From Guillardia theta CCMP2712 (taxonomy: Eukaryota; Protista; Cryptophyta): a DNA stretch of 64,000 nt. Positions 22,326 to 41,704 of this stretch are shown here, piece by piece (positions within the stretch are counted from its first letter, which is position 1; the number at the start of each line of letters is the position of its first letter). The position numbers were made by a program, and so were the translations under genes. Under the pieces are notes generated by a model. That model saw only the letters and a program-made list of their open reading frames with translations, was not told the DNA's origin and did no database searches. Where the stretch lies: positions 97,525-161,524 of the forward strand of contig NW_005434621.1 of the NCBI RefSeq assembly GCF_000315625.1. Reading direction: 5' to 3'.

Positions 22326-24492
22326 ATGGTAACCCTTTAAACAGGCTGCTGGGACCAACCTCTACAGGCTTTTCATGCAATGAGTGGTCCCAAACACACT
22401 AAGTGAGCTGTGGCAGGCCTGGATCTTGTTGTTCATGTATGTTTGACTTTATCTCAGGACTGGAAGAGGTACTGCGATCATTCGGAACAAGAAGAGCCCA
22501 ACCAAGTGCATCACAGTGGAATCGAGGAATGGACAGACCAGAGACGTGACAGTGCCGAAAACACGGAATGATGTGCCGAAATCCGAGAGAGAGTCAGCAT
22601 TAATGTCCCTCCTTGCAGGGTTCTCCCCGCCGAATTCGGTGATTTTTCTATCTTCCTTTATCCGCCAGACTTAACCTACCGAACGACTGTGTAAGGATGT
22701 GCCTGAAGGTCTGATTGTTCCTTTGGTGCAGGGAGGAATGCAGGGAAAGCTGGTCCGGGGCACAAGCAGAAGTCGAGCGCTCGTGGATGCTGCCACCAAG
22801 GACCCGGGATCGTTGAGCTTGAAGAAAGCTGCGATCACGAGCAGCCCGACAAGTCAAAGAACTCCTGTGAGCGATGGTAGTCGAGCGCACCATGGAATGC
22901 CTGATCTTTGTGCAGTTGACGGCGATCAAAGCTCAAAATCAGATTGTGGACCGCCAGGCATCAGAACCATCGTTCCCCGGGTCCAGCCCGTCAAGGTCTG
23001 CTGTGAAGGGATCGACCTTGCTACAGGTCTGTTCCTTCCTGCTCGTCCGGAAACTTGAGGTTTTCCCTGAAGATGGGTTGCAGAGGGGGCCAGACCCGGC
23101 GTCTAGGTTCAGATCGTCGCTGGGGTTCGATGAGAGGCCGAGGTCAAAGCTCAGGATGTGTAGAGAGGCAGCTGGTCCCGGCGCTTCCGAGGGGACGCAA
23201 CCCGCACGTGAGAAGCGGAAGGCGCTCAAGTTCTCGGATCCACCTCGAGACAGCAAGGCGCAAAAGTGCGACACGATCGACTTGACGTTGGACTCAGAGG
23301 GCGAGGGGGATGAAGCGGAGGAAGACCTAGTCACCGAGACGGCACCCAGCCTCGATGATCTTATCCTCATCACTGGGTCGAGCTCCACGGGAACATCAGA
23401 TACTCTTGTAGATCGAGGCTGCCTGACGAGGAAGGAGCTCGAAGGTGAGTGATATTCTGTGCTGTACCACTGTCCTGGGCTGATCCTGTCCTACTCAGCT
23501 CTCCAGTCAGCTGAGCAGGAGATGACTTGCGATTTCCTGGACAGCATCTGGGTCGGACGAGACACCTTCATCCGAGAAGCTTGCAGATCCAACAAAACGA
23601 GTAGCAGGAAATTATCCAAAGGGAGCCAGAGGGTCTCCACGATCTCAGTGGAAGGGATGGGAAATTTTGCCATCACGGCCAAGGAGCTTAAGTGTCTGCT
23701 GGACAATTCCTGGTTGAACGACGAGATCATCAACTCCTACATGGCTCTGCTGCGCCTTAGGTCGAAGATCCATGAAGGGCTGAACGACACGTCCTTCCCT
23801 CGATGCGAGTTCTTCAGCAGCTTCTTCTACGCCATCCTGCGTAACGCCAAGGTTCGGTGGAGGGCCCTTATCGAGCAGCGCTGACTGCCATCCAGGGCGG
23901 ATACTCTTACAAGAATGTGGAGAGGTGGGGGCGGAGGAAGAACTTTCTAGAGTGCGACCACATCTTGTTTCCCATCAATGTTTCGAACATGCACTGGTGC
24001 CTCGCCGTGGTTTCCCCGAGGGACCTCAAGATTGAGTGAGAGGCTGATGGCGAGAAGTCTGGCGTGCGACTGAGGGGAGCTGGCAGGTACTACGACTCCA
24101 TGGGAGGAGAGAACAAGACCTGTGTTGACCTTCTTGAGAGTAAGAGGAGGAGGAGGAGGAGGAGGAGGAGGAGGAGGGGTTGAAGGTCAGCGGTGACTTG
24201 GCTGTCAGGGTACATGCAGGATGAAGGAGCATATCGCAAAATAGAGCATTTTCAAAGTTCCTGGAACAAGTTCTTTCGAGGCCCTCCCGATGTCAGCCTT
24301 GCTCTGTGCCCCGCTCTCCTCTCACCCGATGACCAGGTGCCGGAACAGAAGGATGGGTCAGGATGTGGAGTGTTTGCATGCGCGTTCGCTGACTGCATCA
24401 GCGCTGGCAAGGACGTGAAAAGTTTCGAACAGAACAACGTCTCGAGCATCAGGAGATGTATGTCGTCGCTGATCCAGTCCTGTGACATGTAG
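22326..24492 (+). CDS. Ulp1/SENP-family SUMO protease (peptidase C48); start uncertain
   Basis: WLNDEIINSYM, FFSSFFY, FPINVSNMHWCLAV, YYDS, and PEQKDGSGCGVFAC carrying the catalytic His-Asp-Cys triad. Confidence 0.88.
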
Positions 24493-24557: not shown

Positions 24558-26756
24558 TTATTGTTTAGTCTCCCCCATCTCCCCTCAGTTTCCTTCGATT
24601 TTCGTTTCCTTTCATTGAACTGCTTAGTTGATAGACATAAACCTCCTCCCCCCGCCCTCCACCTTCCTCCTGCTCTTCACAGAGCTCCTTCATGGGCAGA
24701 GAGAGGCACTTGGTCAAGGACAGTGACGGAGACGGCCGTCTCCTCCTTGTATCCTGACAGCGGCAGCCGGAAGGAAGCAGTAGTGCCGTACTTGGAGTAG
24801 GGAGGAGAAGTTCTTGACGATATCCTAGGAGGAGGTGAGAGAGTGCAACGCCGAGAACATCTGTCTCACCTCCTCGCGGGCGCGAAGCAGCAGAAGTAGA
24901 TCGAGCAGATCCTGCATGGCGTTAGGGAGCTGAGAGCAGGCGTGGAGGATACTCACAGGAGAAAGAAACAGATGAAGAGCAGCATAGGGAGCAGCCATGA
25001 GTTGATAGCAGCCACGAACTCCCTCCAGAAATTGCTCCTCCTACGACTAGAAGTCAGAGCGCTACTTACTAGTTGTCACCTATCCCACCTGCTGTTATCT
25101 CCTGGTATCGCCCCCAGCGCCCTCTGCGCATCCCTCCCACTTGCAATGGTGGAGTTGACAAACGCGTTGAACACAGCGTCCCAGTCCGTCTCGCACTCCC
25201 CTTGCTCCCCTAGTCCGCATCCTCGCCTCACCTTCCTCGCCTCGCACGTCAAGCTGCTGCATGCTGCACAGACGCTGTCCGTGGTGGTTGTGCACTCGCC
25301 TCTGGCATACTCCTCCCTCCCACACGCCCTGCATGGAGAACACTCTGTGCGGTAGGCCGAGTTAGAAGCAAATGAACCGCTCGGGCAAGGGACGCATTCC
25401 CCCGCTTCACTTCCTCCGCATCCCCTTCTGTACATCCCTGGGTTGCACGAAGCGCAAGCAGTACATATCCTGCTGACCAGCTGCGAGCACGTCTGCAAGG
25501 CGTACTGGCCAGTAGGACATGGCGAGCAATCTGTGCCGGAGGTGCCGGAGGGACTGGAGGACGTCTGTGCGTTCCCTCCTGGGCCTGACTGCGTGCTCTG
25601 CTGAGGCCCCGAAGATCCACTCTGCCCCCCCCCACCACCACCCGCATTTCTGCCATCGTGACCGTCGGCAATGGCGATGAGACCTGATCCGGGGTTGAAG
25701 CACCTGCAGGCGAGAGTCAACTCCTCCTCCTGGCCGCATCACTGTACAAACCAGGTCGTCGATCCTTTCACTGTGCTGGATTGGCCGACCTGTCAAGGAA
25801 TATCACCAAGGTGACAGCAGGAGACCGAAGATGGTACCAAGGCGATCCATAGGGGGGGCGGAGTCTGCCATGGAGAAACAGGGCTGGGAGGAGTCGCTGG
25901 CTCCATGGCAAGCGATTGAGTCACCGTCACTTGACCCGACTGACGCCAAGGCCGAGGGGTCAGCGGAGGCGGGAAGCAGCGAGGAGGCAACAGACCTGGT
26001 CCGCCAGAGTCTCTACGGTCGTTGGGATGCCGGAGGCATCAGCAGGAAGGAGCTGTCCAGCAGGTTTCGCTGCGTAACAATCGGCCTTGACAAGACCAGG
26101 GACCAGGAACACGACCTGACGCATGTCAACGCCCCCCCCACCAAGCAAGACGGATCACCGCACCTTGACTGAAGTGTAGGTGGGGCAGTACGAGAAGGAG
26201 CAGGAGGGCAGCGCGATGGCCGACATGAAGGTTCCGTCTTTCATGCCGTGCACGCCGAATTCCAAGGTGTATGAGATCTTGATGTTCAAATCCCTGATCG
26301 CTACTACGTCTTCAGGCCAAGCATCGATGGCCAGCCTGCAAACGGACAGCCCAGGGTTGTCGTTGCTGCTCAAGACTTCTTGCGTATGAGGAACCTGGAG
26401 CACGCAAGGTCAAACCCATAAAGCAGGAGGGATGGCAGACATACTGCAGCTTCGTTGACGACGACCTTGACGTTGGAGATCGCGCACTGGAAGAAAACAT
26501 CGCGGTACATCCGTCTCACTGCAAACTCTCGTCGCACAGTCGACTCCTCCACCACATGCTGCATGTTATGTCCATCCAAAGTCACCGAAGCTGACCACTC
26601 CATAGCCCTTGCTGCCAGCTCCGAGCCCTTTGAAGCATCGTTGATCAGCATCTCTAGGACAAGGCTGTGATGTAGCGTATCATAGGTCCCCGCTGACAGG
26701 ATCTCTGCAGAATGGAGTACCAGTGTCACGAGCAGCAAGCTCCTCACGTCCTTCAT
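24558..26756 (-). CDS. Signal-peptide membrane protein with TNFR/NGFR-like Cys-rich repeats; 3' end approximate
   Basis: MKDVRSLLLVTLVLHSA leader; CSPCPTGQY...CTACASC, CVPCPSGSF...CSPCRACG...ECTTTTDSVC; hydrophobic segment near 24960-25020. Confidence 0.65.
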
Positions 26757-28840
26757 CTTCAAATCACGCCGCTGAAACTCCCTTAGCCAAGACACACTGA
26801 TGAAAAGATTCGGGTATTGTCAAACCATCACCGGAGGTAGGATGTCTGGAGCAAGAGCCTCAGTCAGCTTGTCTGTGGCTGTCCTCCGAGCAGCCGCCCC
26901 TCTACCTGCTTTCCGACTTCACCGCCCTCCCCCCGATATAGAAACATGGCCGGTTGACTAGCGGAGCCGCAGAACCGAGTGAGTCGGGCCAGCCCTTACT
27001 GACTGAGTCACGAGTCAACTCAGTCCGGCCGCGATCCCGGTCCGCTGAGGCTCACAGCCCGGCGGGCTCGGACCGTGGCCCAGATCATCCGGGAGCCAGA
27101 TCCAGGAGCCCCCACCGGCTGGTGAGCCCCAGCCTCTGTGACTCGCAGGTGCCCGTCCGGTCGCCACCGCACTGACACTGCCGACCGCCCGGGGCGGCCG
27201 GCCCGGCGGCCGTGACACCGACGGTCGCCGCCGTGACTCGGCGAATGATCGCTGGCATCCCGGGCGCGCTTGGGACAGCAGTCGGCAGGATGATGTCTGC
27301 TGAGTACCGGGGTTGGTTCAACGTCACATTTTTTAACGAGTCTCGCACCGCGGCCGGCGAGCGTGACCGTCTCCCGGCCGGCACTGGGCCATGCCGGGCC
27401 CGGCCGCACTCAGTGATACTCAGGCATTATGCTCTTTTCAAGGGATAAGAACCCCTACTCGTGACTGGCCTCAGTTTACTACCGGGTGACCGGGGCCGCG
27501 GGAGCTCAGTGATCGGGGAGAAAAAAACCTCTTCAAGTCAGGCTGTCGAACCTTTTCAACCGTGCCCTACCCACCGGGCCCCATTGATCTAAGTTTGTGG
27601 GAGGACAACGGGGTCCTGAAGGCAACTTGCTATTCCCCCGGCATCTTTTTCTTACGGGAGAGGCCCGGCGAGTTTGACTGTCAGTACCCCACCCCCCTCT
27701 GAACGAGGCTGCCAGTACCCGATACAGTACCCCCTGACCCCCCAGTGTGATTCAATGATTGAACGCCCCCTTCAACCAGGGGTCATCGCAACTTTACTGT
27801 TCAATGGGGACCGCGCGACCGGCCTGTACAGTACCATGGCACTGGATGGTGAAGATTTCCTCTTACCCTCCCCCTGAAATATCGCAGAGGGCCTTCGCTT
27901 CCCATCATGTTCCCGCAGGCATCTTTGGGCCTTCCACCTTCCAGGACCCCCTTTGGAACCGCGGCCCTCTTGCGTCCCTTTGCCGGTAGTAACGACTCCC
28001 CACCCTCAGGCCCTACCAGGTACGGGTTCCACAGGTCACCGTAGTACCCCAATGATTCCTGGCAATTATTGGCAGTACCCCCACCTTTGTATAGATAGAC
28101 CCAGGCCTTACTACCCGTGGAATTGAGTTGCACAGACAACCCCACCCCCATGGACCATGGGACCCTCCCTAAGTCTTGGGACTAGTGGAGGCAGCTGCGA
28201 CTGGTCGCTGCAAGGGACCGGCGGGCCTACTAAGGTATAGTCAAGGAAGTTACGCCCGTAAGACCCATTGGCATGCTCCTCGCCGTCCTCGCCCTCGCAG
28301 TATCGCTTCTGCTTGCAGATGCTTCTTGTCCTGAGTCCTCTCAACAAATAGCAAGATTCCTGCTCGATAAGACTAAGTTTTCACCCATATTCGCGTCCTT
28401 CTGATCGGTCGAACTGCTGCATCTTCCTCAAGAGTGTATCTTTGACGATTCATGTGCCGTATCTCCTTTTTCATTGCTTTAAAAGGCCCTTGCGGTATCA
28501 TTAGAAGGTCTCAGCATATAGGTCGCTGAAACTTCATTCATCACGGCTTAGAACAACAATTACTTGCATGGTTTACATGCAATATCACGCTTGTTTGCAT
28601 GTCCATGCCAATCCATGGGTGTGACAATCAAAGTTTTGTCTCTCTCTTGATTATCATTTATTTGCCAATCGTTGTACATAGTCGCACATGGCAAGACAGA
28701 TCTCTTCCTCCATATCAACTTTAGAGTTCTTAGATAGCCTGTCACCAGCATGCGCCTTGTGATCAAATACTCTCTTCTTCCTCTCTTCTCTCTGTTGTCA
28801 TACTCGAGCTAATAACATGTCCTTTTGCAGCAGCTGAAGC

Positions 28841-30257
28841 ATGTCAAGCATCACCTGCGATCCTGCCATTTACGGCGAATGGTCAAGAGAAAATCAGTTC
28901 TGCGTTGAGAAGTCTCTGATCACCTTGGACGGCATCAAGTATGTGCAACTTGTCATGGTAACGAGTTTGTTTTTCATGCTTGTTTCTTGCATTGAAATCG
29001 CGAGACAGGCGGTTGTTTCTGCATGTCAGGTGTTCTTCATGGTGACACGAGCGCCCAAAGTCCCATGGGAGGCAATCTATCTCCCGACAACAGAGATGAT
29101 TACATACAGCTTGGCTTTCACTGGCAATGGTTACATCCGAGTTGCTAATGGAAAGTACCTTCCATGGGCCCGTATGGCTTCATGGTTATGTACTTGTCCC
29201 ATCATGTTGGGTTTAGTGAGCAACATGGCGCTGGTGAAATACAAGGTAACAACGAATGACATGCATATCTTCTTTCAATGATTGTTGTTGTCAGAGCATC
29301 CCTTTGAATCCAATGATGATCGCGGCAAGTAGCATTTGCACCGTATTCGGAATTACTGCATCTGTCGTTCTCGATCCCCTGCATGTATGGCTATATTGCT
29401 TCATCTCTTCCATCTTCTTCATTTTCGAGATGGTTGTCGCGTTTGCAATCTTCGCGATAACAATTCATGATTTCCAAACAATCGGAAGCCCAATGTCACT
29501 CAAGGTGGTTGAAAGACTGAAACTCATGCGTATAGTGTTCTATGTATCCTGGATGGCATACCCTATTCTTTGGAGTTTTTCTTCTACAGGAGCGTGTATT
29601 ATGAGCGAGAACACTAGTTCAGTGCTGTATCTTCTCGGAGACGCTCTTTGCAAGAACACTTACGGAATTCTCCTGTGGGCCACAACTTGGGGGCTCCTGA
29701 ATGGAAAGTGGGACAGGGATTACGTCAAGGGCAGGAACGTGGACGGCACTTTGATGCCAGAGTATGAGCAGGACTTGGAGAAAGGGAACACAGAAAGGTA
29801 CGAGGACGCAAGGGCAGGAGAGACCTTCGAAGTCAAGATGTTTGGAAGGACCTTGACCTCTGTTAGGAGGTCCAGGAGGAGGCCCAGGCGCGACATCGTC
29901 TTCAATGGCGGCGACCGGAACAGGTTGTCGGACTCTGACTCGGAGAGGAGGAGGAGGAGGAAGAAGTACCAGCGCAAGGACAGCGAGTCGGAGAACTCCA
30001 GCGACGAGAGCATGGGCTCCGAGCATGAGAAGAACAGACGCAAGGGCAAGAAGAAGAACAAGGAGAATCGCAGGTCGGCACCTCCCAAGGAAGATTCAAC
30101 CTCCGACACACTCCGAGACGCCGAGATCAAGAGGATTATGGACCTCATGAAGCGAAATGCTGGCAGCGACATTCCCGGCCTTGATGGCGATGGAAGGCTG
30201 CGAGATGATGGTGGTCTCATACCCACGAGGAACGAGGAGCATGATGATTCGGCTTAG
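28841..30257 (+). CDS. ACR1: Anion channelrhodopsin 1 (light-gated Cl-/anion channel), 438 aa; exons 28841-28957, 29009-29245, 29295-30257
   Basis: Spliced protein MSSITCDPAIYGEWSRENQFCVEKS... matches GtACR1 as I know it. Helix 3 YLPWARMASWLCTCP (R94, S97, C102); helix 7 GDALCKN (D234, C237, K238); E68; C21/C219. Two canonical GT-AG introns of 51 and 49 nt. Confidence 0.98.
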
Positions 30258-30968
30258 GAGAATGAATTCAAGCATCTACACACCTGCCTCTCCCCCTCTC
30301 TCCTTCTCGTCTTTTCGCTAGTGGCTGCGGTCGCTAGAGCTATTTTACACTTGCAACCTTGTACCACGCAAAGCTTCTTCATGTTGCCATCACTGAGATT
30401 TTCTCACTGACACGTCTCCCTGAAGCTTCATGATGGATTCTCCTCACCATAATTTCACGATTACGTTGGTCCTTCCATCCCGCCTGAAGGCATGATCGTT
30501 TCATCTCACAAGCCATCTCATGTGTCAACATCCATTTCCCTTCCTCCCTCCCCCACAGCGTCTCCCTCCTCCCTCCTTCATAGTCCACATTCCTTTCGTT
30601 CCTTCCCCCGTCTCCTCTACGGATCAACCCGGCAATTCTCCCCGCATCGGATCCCTTCTCGCATTCTACCGCCATCCTCGTACCCTCCTTTCTTCCTCAG
30701 TCTTCCCTCGCATCCTCTGCCATCTTCCCTCGCACATCCCACTGTACAGGCTTGCTCGACCCGCATCCCTGCCCCCCCCCCCCCCCCCTCTCAATAAATA
30801 AGAACCCCGCACTCCAGTGGGCGCATCTCAAAAGCGATTCATCCCTGCCCTCCTCCCGTCCTCCTCCTCCAGCCTCCCTAGCAGGAGCGACAGCTGATCT
30901 TGCCTCGTCTCCTTCTTGTCCTCGTCCCCTCCATTGCGCCCACAACTCGACCGTATCAACAGTCAGCA

Positions 30969-32475: not shown

Positions 32476-32574
32476 GAGTAGTGCCGATAGAATAAAGCAC
32501 ATGTCTTAAGCATGGACGAAACAAGTCCTCGGTCTACACGGACCCACGGTTGTATTTCTACGATGCGAAGGGTT

Positions 32575-32876
32575 TTAATAGATGTTGATGACATCTCCGA
32601 GCCACTCGTTCTGGTACTCGGTGGGGTCGACAGGCTGTTCGTACAAGCCGAGTTAGCTCTTCTTATTCTTCCTCTTCCTCCCCCTCCCTCTCTTACCTCA
32701 GTGATGTGGTAGGTCACTGGTGAGTCATCGAGGTCGTCGTAGATGTTGTCGTAGACGCCGCTGGGCATGCCCTGGAAGAAGGAGGGCATGCCGTCACACC
32801 AGTGTCCACCCCAGGTCCATGGAGCATCATCGAGCATCGAGGATCTCTTAACGATCTTGAAGAGGGGAGAGCGCAT
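32575..32876 (-). CDS. Small acidic aromatic-rich protein, paralog A (79 aa; exons 32876-32697, 32634-32575)
   Basis: Paralogous to 34408 and 39609 with the same phase-0 intron. Ends PVDPTEYQNEWLGDVINIY*. Confidence 0.75.
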
Positions 32877-34407
32877 TCTGTTTCAATAAGGTCAAATCAG
32901 TGCGCGAGTTATACAACCTAACGTCTTTCTCGACCAATCTCTAACTACTGCAGAGTTCAGCTATCGATCGTCACGGTACGTCGATAATGCACAACATCGC
33001 AGAGATACATCAAAGACCAAATTATACTGGCTTCACATCCAATCGAGGCTCAGGAAACCATTTCGGCAGAAAGTGTACCTCTTGGAAAATTCACGGTTTC
33101 CTGCAAAGCTTTGACAACTTCCCTTCCAACATCCACGGTAGGAATCTCTGATCAGCTGCATGAAGGCTTGTAATTCCACTACACTCCTCCTCTTCTCCTC
33201 CTCTTTTCCTCATCTTGCTACCTCCCTGTCCTCAACTTCGCTGCATGTGCATTGCGATCTGAAACATCAAATGATGAAGAGACAGCGCGCGGGCCACATC
33301 CCCTTCCTAATCTCCTAGGAGCACTACCCCCTACCCCCCCTTCTACTACAATTGAACGCCACCCGTATTGTTTGTTTTGAGTAAACTTTAGTATGCTATA
33401 CTTCATCACCCCTGCTTCAAGGCGAGTCATATGTATCCCACCAGGGGTAGGGGTAGTCAAATAGCGAAGGGTCACTGTTTTGACTCTTGGATTGGTTCTA
33501 GCGAGGTCTTAGTTTGAAAATACTCCAGTAGAACCGGGTCCTAGTAATTTGTCATGACCTAGCATAGATTTGGATTCAAAATGTTTATCTGCTGTGTTCA
33601 ATTTGAGCCCTTTCGAAAACAAGTGATATCCATAGTACCCCATAGATTATCGATAACATTTGGGGTAAGGGGACACATGTTTGAGAAAACATATTTTTCC
33701 ATAGGGTAGTACATGAATTTATTGGTTTCAAAGATTTTCATGACCATCGTGAAATATTTCCCGGAGAGTTATCAAAAGACAGCCGAAGCGTACGAAAGGT
33801 CACGAAGGTAATGCAGTAGTCCACTTCCTCTTTGTCGCATGTTGTTCTCCTTTCATGATCGACTCCTCGTCCACCCTTCTTACATCCTCCATCAACCACC
33901 ACCATTGCAACACTCTTGCTCTCGTTTTCCGCTGCCTCTGCTCTTGATTCCGCTGTCCCCTTCTCTTCATCCTGAATCAAAACAACCTAGCTGTCTTGTT
34001 GACGTCAACTTTGAACCCCTTCGTTTCTCTTGCTCCGACATTTCGGATCGAACCCTTTCTCGTAGTGATGTTCAGGGAGACGAATTGATTGCTCTTTCGT
34101 AACAATGGTTTAACATTGTAACAATGGTTTAACATTGTAACAATGTTCGGAGTTTTCCTGTGGCTGTGTGTGCCACAAAGCTTGTTTGGAATGTGTATCA
34201 TGCTCCTAGCGCTCCCTTTCGTGTTCAAGATGAAAGTTGAAAGATGCATATGAATCAGGCTGTGATTGCACTGTGCCTCCTCCACTTACATGAGAGCACG
34301 GTATTCTGTTGCAGTCATTCACGCTTGGATGTATACGAATCCTTGTTTCATGGGATTCGCTAGATTGCAAAGCGACCATCATGCTGACAAAGCATTTGCA
34401 GTCAAAC

Positions 34408-34693
34408 ATGATGTTCAAGGTGTTGCCAATCCGCTCCCTCGAGCTCGCCCCCTGGACCTGGAAGAGCAGCTGGAACAAGGACATGCCCTCCTTCTTCCAG
34501 GGCATGCCCAACGGTGTCTACGACAACATCTACGAGGACCTCGATGACTCACCTGTGTCCTACCACACCACTGAGGTGAGAGAGAGGGAGGAGGAGGAGG
34601 AATAAGAAGAGCTAACTCGGCTTGTACGAACAGCCTGTCGACCCCACCGAGTACCAGAACGAGTACATTGGCAATGTCATCGGCATCTACTAA
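34408..34693 (+). CDS. Small acidic aromatic-rich protein, paralog B (75 aa; exons 34408-34575, 34634-34693)
   Basis: MMFKVLPIRSLELAPWTWKSSWNKDMPSFFQGMPNGVYDNIYEDLDD...YIGNVIGIY*. Confidence 0.78.
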
Positions 34694-34992
34694 GCCTTTT
34701 CTCTCCCCGTTGCTAGTGTGTTGGCAATAAATTTGATACATACCTGAGCAACGTCGTGTGAGAGTTGACCACCCCCACATCTTACTTCCTCGAGGGTTGC
34801 GGTTGCTGTGAAGTCTTACACGTCATGCGTTCACCTCTCGCCAAATGGGGCAGGATTGGCTACAACCTCTCTGTTGCGTTCCAGGAAACAAATTTTGCTG
34901 CCTCACCGTCGTCGATACAGCTTACGGAATGATCAGCCAATATCACCAAATGGTGCCCCTGCAGCAACTAGACGCCAACCAGAATCTCCTGA

Positions 34993-39541: not shown

Positions 39542-39608
39542 ATCTTAGCTTAGCTGTGTATTGTTCTTCTATTGAACAAGTATAGAGCAAGTTGCTCCAC
39601 CAAAATGT

Positions 39609-39891
39609 TTAGTAGATTTTGATGACATCTCCGAGCCAATGCTCCTGATACTCGGTGGGGTCGACAGGCTGTTCGCACAAGCCGCGTTAGCTCTTCTTCT
39701 TCCTCCTCCTCCCTCTCTCTCACCTCAGTGGTGTGGTAGGACACAGTTGAGGTATCAAGGTCGTCGTAGATGTTGTCGTAGACACCGTTGGGCATGCCCT
39801 GGAAGAAGGAGGGCATGTCACTGTTCCAGCTGCTCTGCCAGGTCCAGGGGGCGAGGTCGAGGGAGCGGATTGGCAACACCTTGAACATCAT
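39609..39891 (-). CDS. Small acidic aromatic-rich protein, paralog C (75 aa; exons 39891-39724, 39668-39609)
   Basis: MMFKVLPIRSLDLAPWTWQSSWNSDMPSFFQGMPNGVYDNIYDDLDT...WLGDVIKIY*. Confidence 0.78.
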
Positions 39892-41704
39892 TTTCTACAA
39901 AAGGATGTCAACCCATTATCACCATTGAGAAAAATTTGATTTGTCGAGATACAAAACGCATGTTACAGAGTTTGTGAAAGCAGGACATAACATCGGGAGC
40001 ATCGCAGCCAAATCATATTCAACTTTATGAGAAGTTATGACAACATATAAATCACCAAATTCATCCATTTCCCTTGACCATGCGTGGGGAGGAGTAGAAA
40101 CAGACAAAAGAATGTATATTTTGCACGAAAAAAAGCAAGAGAATACAAGACAAGTCACAGCATTTTTGAAATATCATCGTAGCGAATTTCTTCAAGCGTC
40201 TTGTATGAATGCAGGTAAAGGTATGTGAGGAGTGTACAAGAAATGTGAACAAGCAGGCAAAAGAGATGCCTGCAGATAGACAGCAGTGATCACAGAATTC
40301 AGACAACCAAGTCACGAAAAGATATTATAGCAAAGAAAGGATGTTGCAAGACTTAGCATATGGTGGTGGATGCGGTAGTTGTGCAGGATAGGCAAATCAA
40401 CCATACGCACAGTCAGAAACAAACACAAGGCATTTCATTGCATGGGAGTAGCTAGCAAGGAGGAAGGTAAGGGCAAGCAGAAGCGTGTGTATCGAGTGGG
40501 ATCGTTGATATTCGGACGAGGCAGAGAAAGCAAGCAGCAGCTTTTCTCATCGCGCCACATTCAGCATGTTACCTCTTCGATGAAAGGGCAGGTTGACTCT
40601 TGGGCTACTGGTAGGAACAATTCTCCGTTACACCTTGTCCCCTGAAAAGCCATTTCGTAACGACCGTGACCGGTGACCGGACTTGGTCACAGTACCGTAC
40701 AGTACTGGCGTCCCCGGCCGCGCCACTGTCGGGTGACTCGGACCGGGCCCGGCCCGGACAGCGGTCGGGCCGGCCCGGCCAGTCGTGACTCAGACGCAGG
40801 CTGGCCTACCGTACTAGGCCCGGCCCCCCGCTTCACTCAGCGGCCGTACGGTCACCGTCAGTCACGGCCACACTGGCCGCACTGAGCGGCCGCGGCGCAG
40901 CGGTACCGTCGTACAGTGACGGTAGAGGCTCGGAGGACTCCTAACTGAGGTTGCCACCGTCGCCGTACTAGGCTAGGCTAGTGCCACTGGTTACTGACTC
41001 GCCGGATCTCGCGGCGGAGTCCGATAGTACGAGCCCGGCACCACTGCCCGGCCCCGGCGGCCGGGCGGCCCGGCCGCCACGCCAAGTTTAGTAGCACCGT
41101 GTAAGTTAACTAAAGTCGGAGTCCCGGCGAGCCTCGGCGCGGCCACCCGGTCCAGGCCAGAGGCCCCGGCGGTCAGCGGCTTGCTCGTAGTTAAATCATT
41201 ATAGGTACTCAAAAGAACTCTTTTGGATCAAGGAGTTCCCCCTGAATCACCAAAAGCTACAGTTTGGGGCTCATATGGTTTTACTACTCTATCTTTACTT
41301 GTCGGTTGGAAGGGAGGGGGTGGGTACATGAAGGGTGTAATTTCGGTCTTTCCGAAGTTCCCACGGTGGGTGGGGTGGGAAGAAGGTAAAACACTTTTAA
41401 TTTTGATTTAGTGAGTAGGTGGTGGGTGGGTAGGCTTGATATTTGTAGGGGTGGATATGAGTTTAGTGCAAGGGGTAGATGCAAGCATAGATTTCTTTCG
41501 AGCAGGAAGTGTAGGAGGGTGGGGTACTGCCTGAAGGATGCACAGGGATTGAAATGATGCTTGTCATGTGGTTTGGAGGGTGAAGAGAGGAGCAGGAGCA
41601 GGAGGAGGAGAAAGAAAATGAAACGATCAAGAGACAGAATGATGATTCACAAAACTTCAGTGGCTAGACAACCCTGATGAAACTGCGGGAGAAGTAAGGA
41701 AGGA

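Follow-up and report, generated by a model that had tools for sequence, protein, structure and literature searches.

Is the microbial rhodopsin encoded at this locus of Guillardia theta CCMP2712 the known light-gated anion channel GtACR1 and, if so, does the locus hold anything beyond the published picture of that protein? The question was addressed within a window of 64,000 nucleotides, which is the whole stretch of DNA that was analysed (contig NW_005434621.1; features in Table 1). A first-pass annotation, made from the letters alone, had proposed two short introns and a product of 438 amino acids. This gene model held: three exons summed to 39 + 79 + 320 codons, with zero internal stops. 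Both introns were exactly skipped in contigs of runs X1 and X7 (two studies), for which the RNA type was a tool's guess, spliced contigs being what is expected of transcripts. Both were kept in the DNA-like run X15. The splice junctions, for which the annotation had looked to cDNA, were thus both supported by the X1 and X7 contigs. Raw RNA reads (run X22, n = 59) clustered near the 3' end, away from the junctions. The X1 and X7 contigs both ended 19 nt beyond the stop codon, where the X22 reads also dropped off, although contigs are unable to prove a transcript end.

Table 1. Positions of the features of the GtACR1 gene and its surroundings, numbered from the first letter of the window.
Feature	Position	Strand	Description or source
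Ulp1-type (Peptidase_C48) protease exon pieces	23857-24492	+	
Cys-rich ORF	25076-25720	-	TNFR/NGFR repeat (PF00020)
Pyrimidine tract and AG trans-splice acceptor	28820..28830	+	AG at 28829-28830; X7 contig, one run
5' UTR, trans-splice site to ATG	28831..28840	+	10 nt
Exon 1	28841..28957	+	Residues 1-39; extracellular cap (Cys6, Cys21) and beginning of helix 1
Intron 1	28958..29008	+	51 nt, GT-AG; stop-free, in frame; absent from X1 and X7 contigs
Exon 2	29009..29245	+	Residues 40-118, helices 1-3; Glu60, Glu68, Thr71, Tyr72, Arg94, Ser97, Thr101, Cys102; Pfam PF01036
Intron 2	29246..29294	+	49 nt, GT-AG; absent from X1 and X7 contigs
Exon 3	29295..30257	+	Residues 119-438 and stop; helices 4-7, then cytoplasmic tail; Tyr207, Cys219, Glu223, Asp234, Lys238, Asn239
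Lys238 codon	29652..29654	+	Retinal Schiff-base lysine (PMC6336409)
Cytoplasmic domain	29826..30254	+	Residues 296-438, 143 aa (PMC10637977)
Conserved tail motif	29826..29879	+	Residues 296-313 (18); 12-sequence alignment, predicted beta-hairpin
Short 3' UTR	30258..30276	+	To the limit of the transcript contigs; X1 and X7 contigs, X22 reads
Repeat element, three diverged copies	32574-32834, 34405-34700, 39602-39894		One copy inverted

The gene model was compared with known structures one exon at a time, with residue numbers summed across exons. Against GtACR1 chain A of PDB entry 6EDQ (6edq_A), exon 1 matched residues 1-39 (E 7.7e-22), exon 2 residues 40-118 (E 2.8e-50), and exon 3 residues 119-295 (E 9.7e-119). 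The displayed alignments of exons 1 and 3 were free of mismatches; for exon 2, the mismatch-free alignments printed were those to 7L1E and 6CSM, two entries that match the exons like 6EDQ. Because the exon borders abut in the PDB chain, these matches independently confirmed the positions of the introns. Exons 2 and 3 also matched the bacteriorhodopsin-like seven-helix domain PF01036 with 64.9 and 105.8 bits, respectively (cut-off 24.6). In the protein database, the UniRef entry of GtACR1 and a GtACR1-EYFP construct were 100% identical to the product, and the orthologue of Hanusia phi 88%. The length agreed with that of published full-length GtACR1 (438 aa, JGI 111593), of which the usual construct comprises 295 aa (PMC10637977), and the composition of the tail (143 aa, 29 acidic and 39 Lys/Arg residues) was that of the published GtACR1 tail. 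No difference from GtACR1 was found. The locus as a whole is almost certainly the nuclear gene of this light-gated anion channel, as the first-pass annotation had recognised, and nothing counts against this identity or against channel function. The ACR1 orthologue of Hanusia phi (P0001, EukProt) comes from another species and was 88% identical over exon 3, with 91% identity in helices 4-7, 83% in the tail, 94% in residues 296-313, and 65% in the final 30 residues.

Two other readings of the locus were weighed against this evidence. With more than 40 rhodopsin genes in G. theta and a glutamate pattern that by itself leaves selectivity open, a paralogue, cation channel, or pump that merely resembles GtACR1 might be considered. 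This reading is refuted by identity to the characterised protein, which is mismatch-free over residues 1-295, whereas the nearest cation channel structure from G. theta, GtCCR2, was matched with an E value of only 7e-07; its probability is negligible. A second protein product, with 17 extra residues in helix 1, would arise if intron 1 were retained, as its length is a multiple of three and it contains no stop, so that a naive open reading frame reads through it. Retention is nevertheless very improbable. Both RNA-type contigs skip the intron, though contigs drop rare variants, and showed no sign of its retention. The protein was crystallised without the 17 residues, and intron 1 is AT-rich, like intron 2 (GC content 0.39 and 0.35, respectively, versus 0.47-0.51 in the exons). 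Gene callers may, for their part, read through this intron and add the 17 residues to helix 1.

All residues named by the first-pass annotation (Glu68, Arg94, Ser97, Cys102, Asp234, and Lys238 in the motif DALCKN) were present at their stated numbers in the exon translations, and Cys21, Glu60, Tyr72, Tyr207, Cys219, Glu223, and Asn239 likewise occurred at the expected numbers. The retinal-binding lysine of helix 7 was thus present as Lys238, and Ser97 put a non-carboxylate at the position of bacteriorhodopsin Asp85 (equivalence from PMC8691836). Both cysteines of the Cys21-Cys219 cap disulfide, a pair conserved in ACRs, were found (conservation of the pair, and roles of Cys6 and Cys21, described in PMC6336409). 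The annotation had described helix 2 as lacking the Glu cluster of chlorophyte cation channelrhodopsins, with Glu68 as the main survivor; Glu68 was indeed kept, but so was Glu60, at the position of ChR2 Glu82. Equivalents of ChR2 Glu82 and Glu90 were therefore both retained, with Ala61 and Ala75 at the positions of Glu83 and Glu97. The further claim that this signature defines anion channels goes too far. The glutamate pattern of ACRs was defined in PMC8406140 and is insufficient alone for anion selectivity, some prasinophyte homologues with the same pattern being cation-selective (PMC8406140), and mutants of Glu68 remain anion-selective (PMC5335703). Proof that the product is an anion channel lies in its identity with the measured protein, rather than in the residue pattern.

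The chlorophyte cation channelrhodopsins ChR2 and C1C2 matched exon 2 weakly (E 5e-07 to 2e-05). They share with GtACR1 the seven-helix dimer, Arg94, Cys102, Asp234, and the equivalents of Glu60 and Glu68. In GtACR1, Ala61, Thr71, Ala75, and Ser97 stand for their Glu83, Lys93, Glu97, and Glu123, and, unlike these proteins, GtACR1 conducts anions and has the Cys21-Cys219 cap disulfide.

The channel mechanism has been studied in detail elsewhere. GtACR1 is a dimer with retinal bound at Lys238, and each protomer is crossed by a tunnel with a small polar and aliphatic lining and three constrictions; chloride current is almost lost in the R94A mutant and is reduced more than 30-fold in the S97E mutant (PMC6336409). 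The L state is the conducting state and fast closing accompanies deprotonation of the Schiff base, while protonation of Asp234 is under debate (PMC8691836). Changing Cl- or NO3- moves the reversal potential by about 50-57 mV, and GtACR1 mediates an anion efflux that depolarises guard cells by 60-80 mV (PMC8270491). Anion conduction, and the reversal-potential experiment that the annotation had suggested for it, are thus already covered by published measurements (PMC8270491; PMC6336409). The pre-mRNA of the gene described here loses two short introns, as the contigs show, to yield a 438-aa seven-helix rhodopsin, which according to published work dimerises and binds all-trans retinal at Lys238. 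In the published mechanism, isomerisation of retinal by light opens the tunnel of small neutral residues. As Ser97 takes the place of the usual proton acceptor, the Schiff base stays protonated during the open state, in which Cl-, Br-, and NO3- flow passively. Closing is governed by Schiff-base deprotonation, involving Glu68 and Asp234, and by Cys102, and the 143-aa tail is reported, from an indirect assay, to tune the photocycle.

Since function, structure, and use of the protein in neurons and plants have all been published, locating its gene adds no discovery. GtACR1 already serves neuroscientists as a neuron silencer, several crystal structures are available, and its use in plants has also been reported. 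The gene, its channel function, and its structure were known; new details were found only at the two ends, as a spliced leader on the transcript and, in the tail, a short conserved motif.

At the 5' end, the X7 contig started with 10 non-genomic letters immediately before the acceptor AG. Together with this AG, they reproduce the 3'-terminal 12 nt of the G. theta spliced leader, which is 17 nt long (leader sequence from PMC5619915). This match of non-genomic letters to the 3' end of the leader shows trans-splicing of ACR1 mRNA at a site 10 nt upstream of the start codon. At least some ACR1 transcripts therefore receive the spliced leader at 28830/28831, as observed in one contig of one run. 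A cis-spliced intron in the 5' UTR was rejected as the source of these letters: no exact copy of the 10 letters occurred within the window, the one match with a single mismatch was at chance level, and the letters matched the published leader exactly (PMC5619915). Trans-splicing affects about 21% of the genes of G. theta (Roy 2017, PMC5619915), and the UTR is 10 nt or shorter in 36.6% of trans-spliced G. theta transcripts. With cryptomonad spliced-leader trans-splicing as described (PMC5619915), ACR1 shares the 3' end of the leader, the pyrimidine tract and CAG acceptor, the short UTR, and a NAGNAG site, formed by a second AG 3 nt downstream of the acceptor AG, which is a possible alternative acceptor. 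No difference was seen; trans-splicing of ACR1 is an ordinary process for G. theta, and no statement on trans-splicing of this gene specifically was found in the literature.

Upstream of the acceptor, the X1 contig continued unspliced past 28500, with 226 further letters beyond, and a low-depth X7 contig reached 28563. The unspliced stretch 28500-28830 is possibly a precursor outron or a long 5' UTR form without leader.

The cytoplasmic tail (residues 296-438) is rich in Arg, Asp, Ser, Lys, and Glu and mostly disordered. It had no Pfam family, and its best score in the ESM Atlas (0.87) was to unrelated Arg/Ser-rich proteins, with low recognition. One study of ACR tails reported neither overall conservation nor conserved residues, found the tails of GtACR1 and GtACR2 to be 36% identical with some predicted secondary structure, and proposed an unspecified contact between tail and channel (PMC10637977). 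In an alignment of 12 sequences, residues 296-313 formed a motif with invariant Lys299, Gly302, Ser307, Val308, Arg310, and Arg313. It begins directly past the end of the standard 1-295 construct, so that laboratory versions cut it off with the tail. In ten homologues with 40-58% identity to GtACR1 in helices 4-7, the motif block was 50-78% identical, versus 3-26% in the linker (residues 265-295) and 8-22% in the stretch after the motif. A profile built from these ten homologues gave 16-50 bits for left-out sequences (GtACR1 40.2, Hanusia 40.5, and seven others), while the best of 840 shuffled tails reached 5.1 bits. The motif mostly lay 29-38 residues beyond the helix-7 block. By profile, it was absent from relatives below about 42% identity, save traces in P0020 and P0022, and it appears limited to GtACR1-like relatives. 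In a limited literature search, no earlier account of the motif came up.

AlphaFold2 was applied to exon 3 by itself and to P0014, a natural homologue in full length. Both models showed the motif as a two-stranded hairpin, at pLDDT near 45-55, and an additional helix near residues 390-407, with pLDDT of about 45-60 across the two elements. At such low pLDDT, the predicted beta-hairpin is only a hint of the shape of residues 296-313. As the homologues are related, conservation of the motif indicates constraint, not function. We tentatively suggest, as a possibility held with less than even confidence, that residues 296-313 form a hairpin module which docks on the cytoplasmic face of the channel or on a partner protein and so mediates the effect of the tail on gating, nitrate preference, or placement within the cell. 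For the question of how the tail acts, the motif represents a small and precise target.

Elsewhere in the tail, residues ~390-407 (30108-30161) made up a second, more weakly conserved element, predicted as an amphipathic helix; Hanusia phi has the same residues here, and most homologues show a similar stretch. A conserved C-terminal motif with terminal Cys (SMC, NMC, AMC, SQC) occurred in P0004-P0010, P0014, P0015, P0017, and P0019 and was absent from GtACR1 and its Hanusia orthologue; in those homologues it is a possible lipidation or binding signal.

No in vivo test of the native role of GtACR1 was found in the literature. Light-driven nitrate uptake during nitrogen starvation, with the tail conferring nitrate preference, was proposed from a yeast pH assay by authors who themselves call for in vivo tests (Ohki et al., 2023; PMC10637977). 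In that assay, activity of the full-length protein with NO3- was 2-4-fold above that with Cl- (PMC10637977), and GtACR1 mRNA was found to be 136-fold up in nitrogen depletion (PMC7714340). Against this proposal stands simple arithmetic (Nernst and competition), for which typical values of seawater, internal anions, and membrane potential were assumed for G. theta. At -100 mV, passive net influx would require an inside nitrate concentration below ~2% of that outside. In seawater of 550 mM chloride and 10-30 uM nitrate, nitrate would account for ~0.01-0.02% of the anion influx at a 4-fold preference. On the same assumed values, the chloride equilibrium would lie between -84 and -43 mV for 20-100 mM inside chloride, so that depolarisation would be expected in a cell whose resting potential is about -100 mV or more negative. 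As this arithmetic speaks against bulk nitrate uptake in the sea, an electrical signal is favoured over nitrate uptake, which we consider rather unlikely, and native roles other than these two appear unlikely as well, if anything slightly more so. On balance, the native job of GtACR1 would, slightly more probably than not, be a light-triggered electrical or ionic signal that is raised in nitrogen starvation, and not bulk nutrient uptake.

Neighbouring open reading frames tested between 24 and 35 kb included no second rhodopsin and no linked operon, and no neighbour forms a unit with the GtACR1 gene. A region upstream (26950-28300) was GC-rich and without a long open reading frame; one frame tested there had no Pfam match. 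Downstream, the three copies of the repeat element were 81-94% alike over 200-300 nt and overlapped open reading frames without Pfam match, which suggests a small gene family or repeat.
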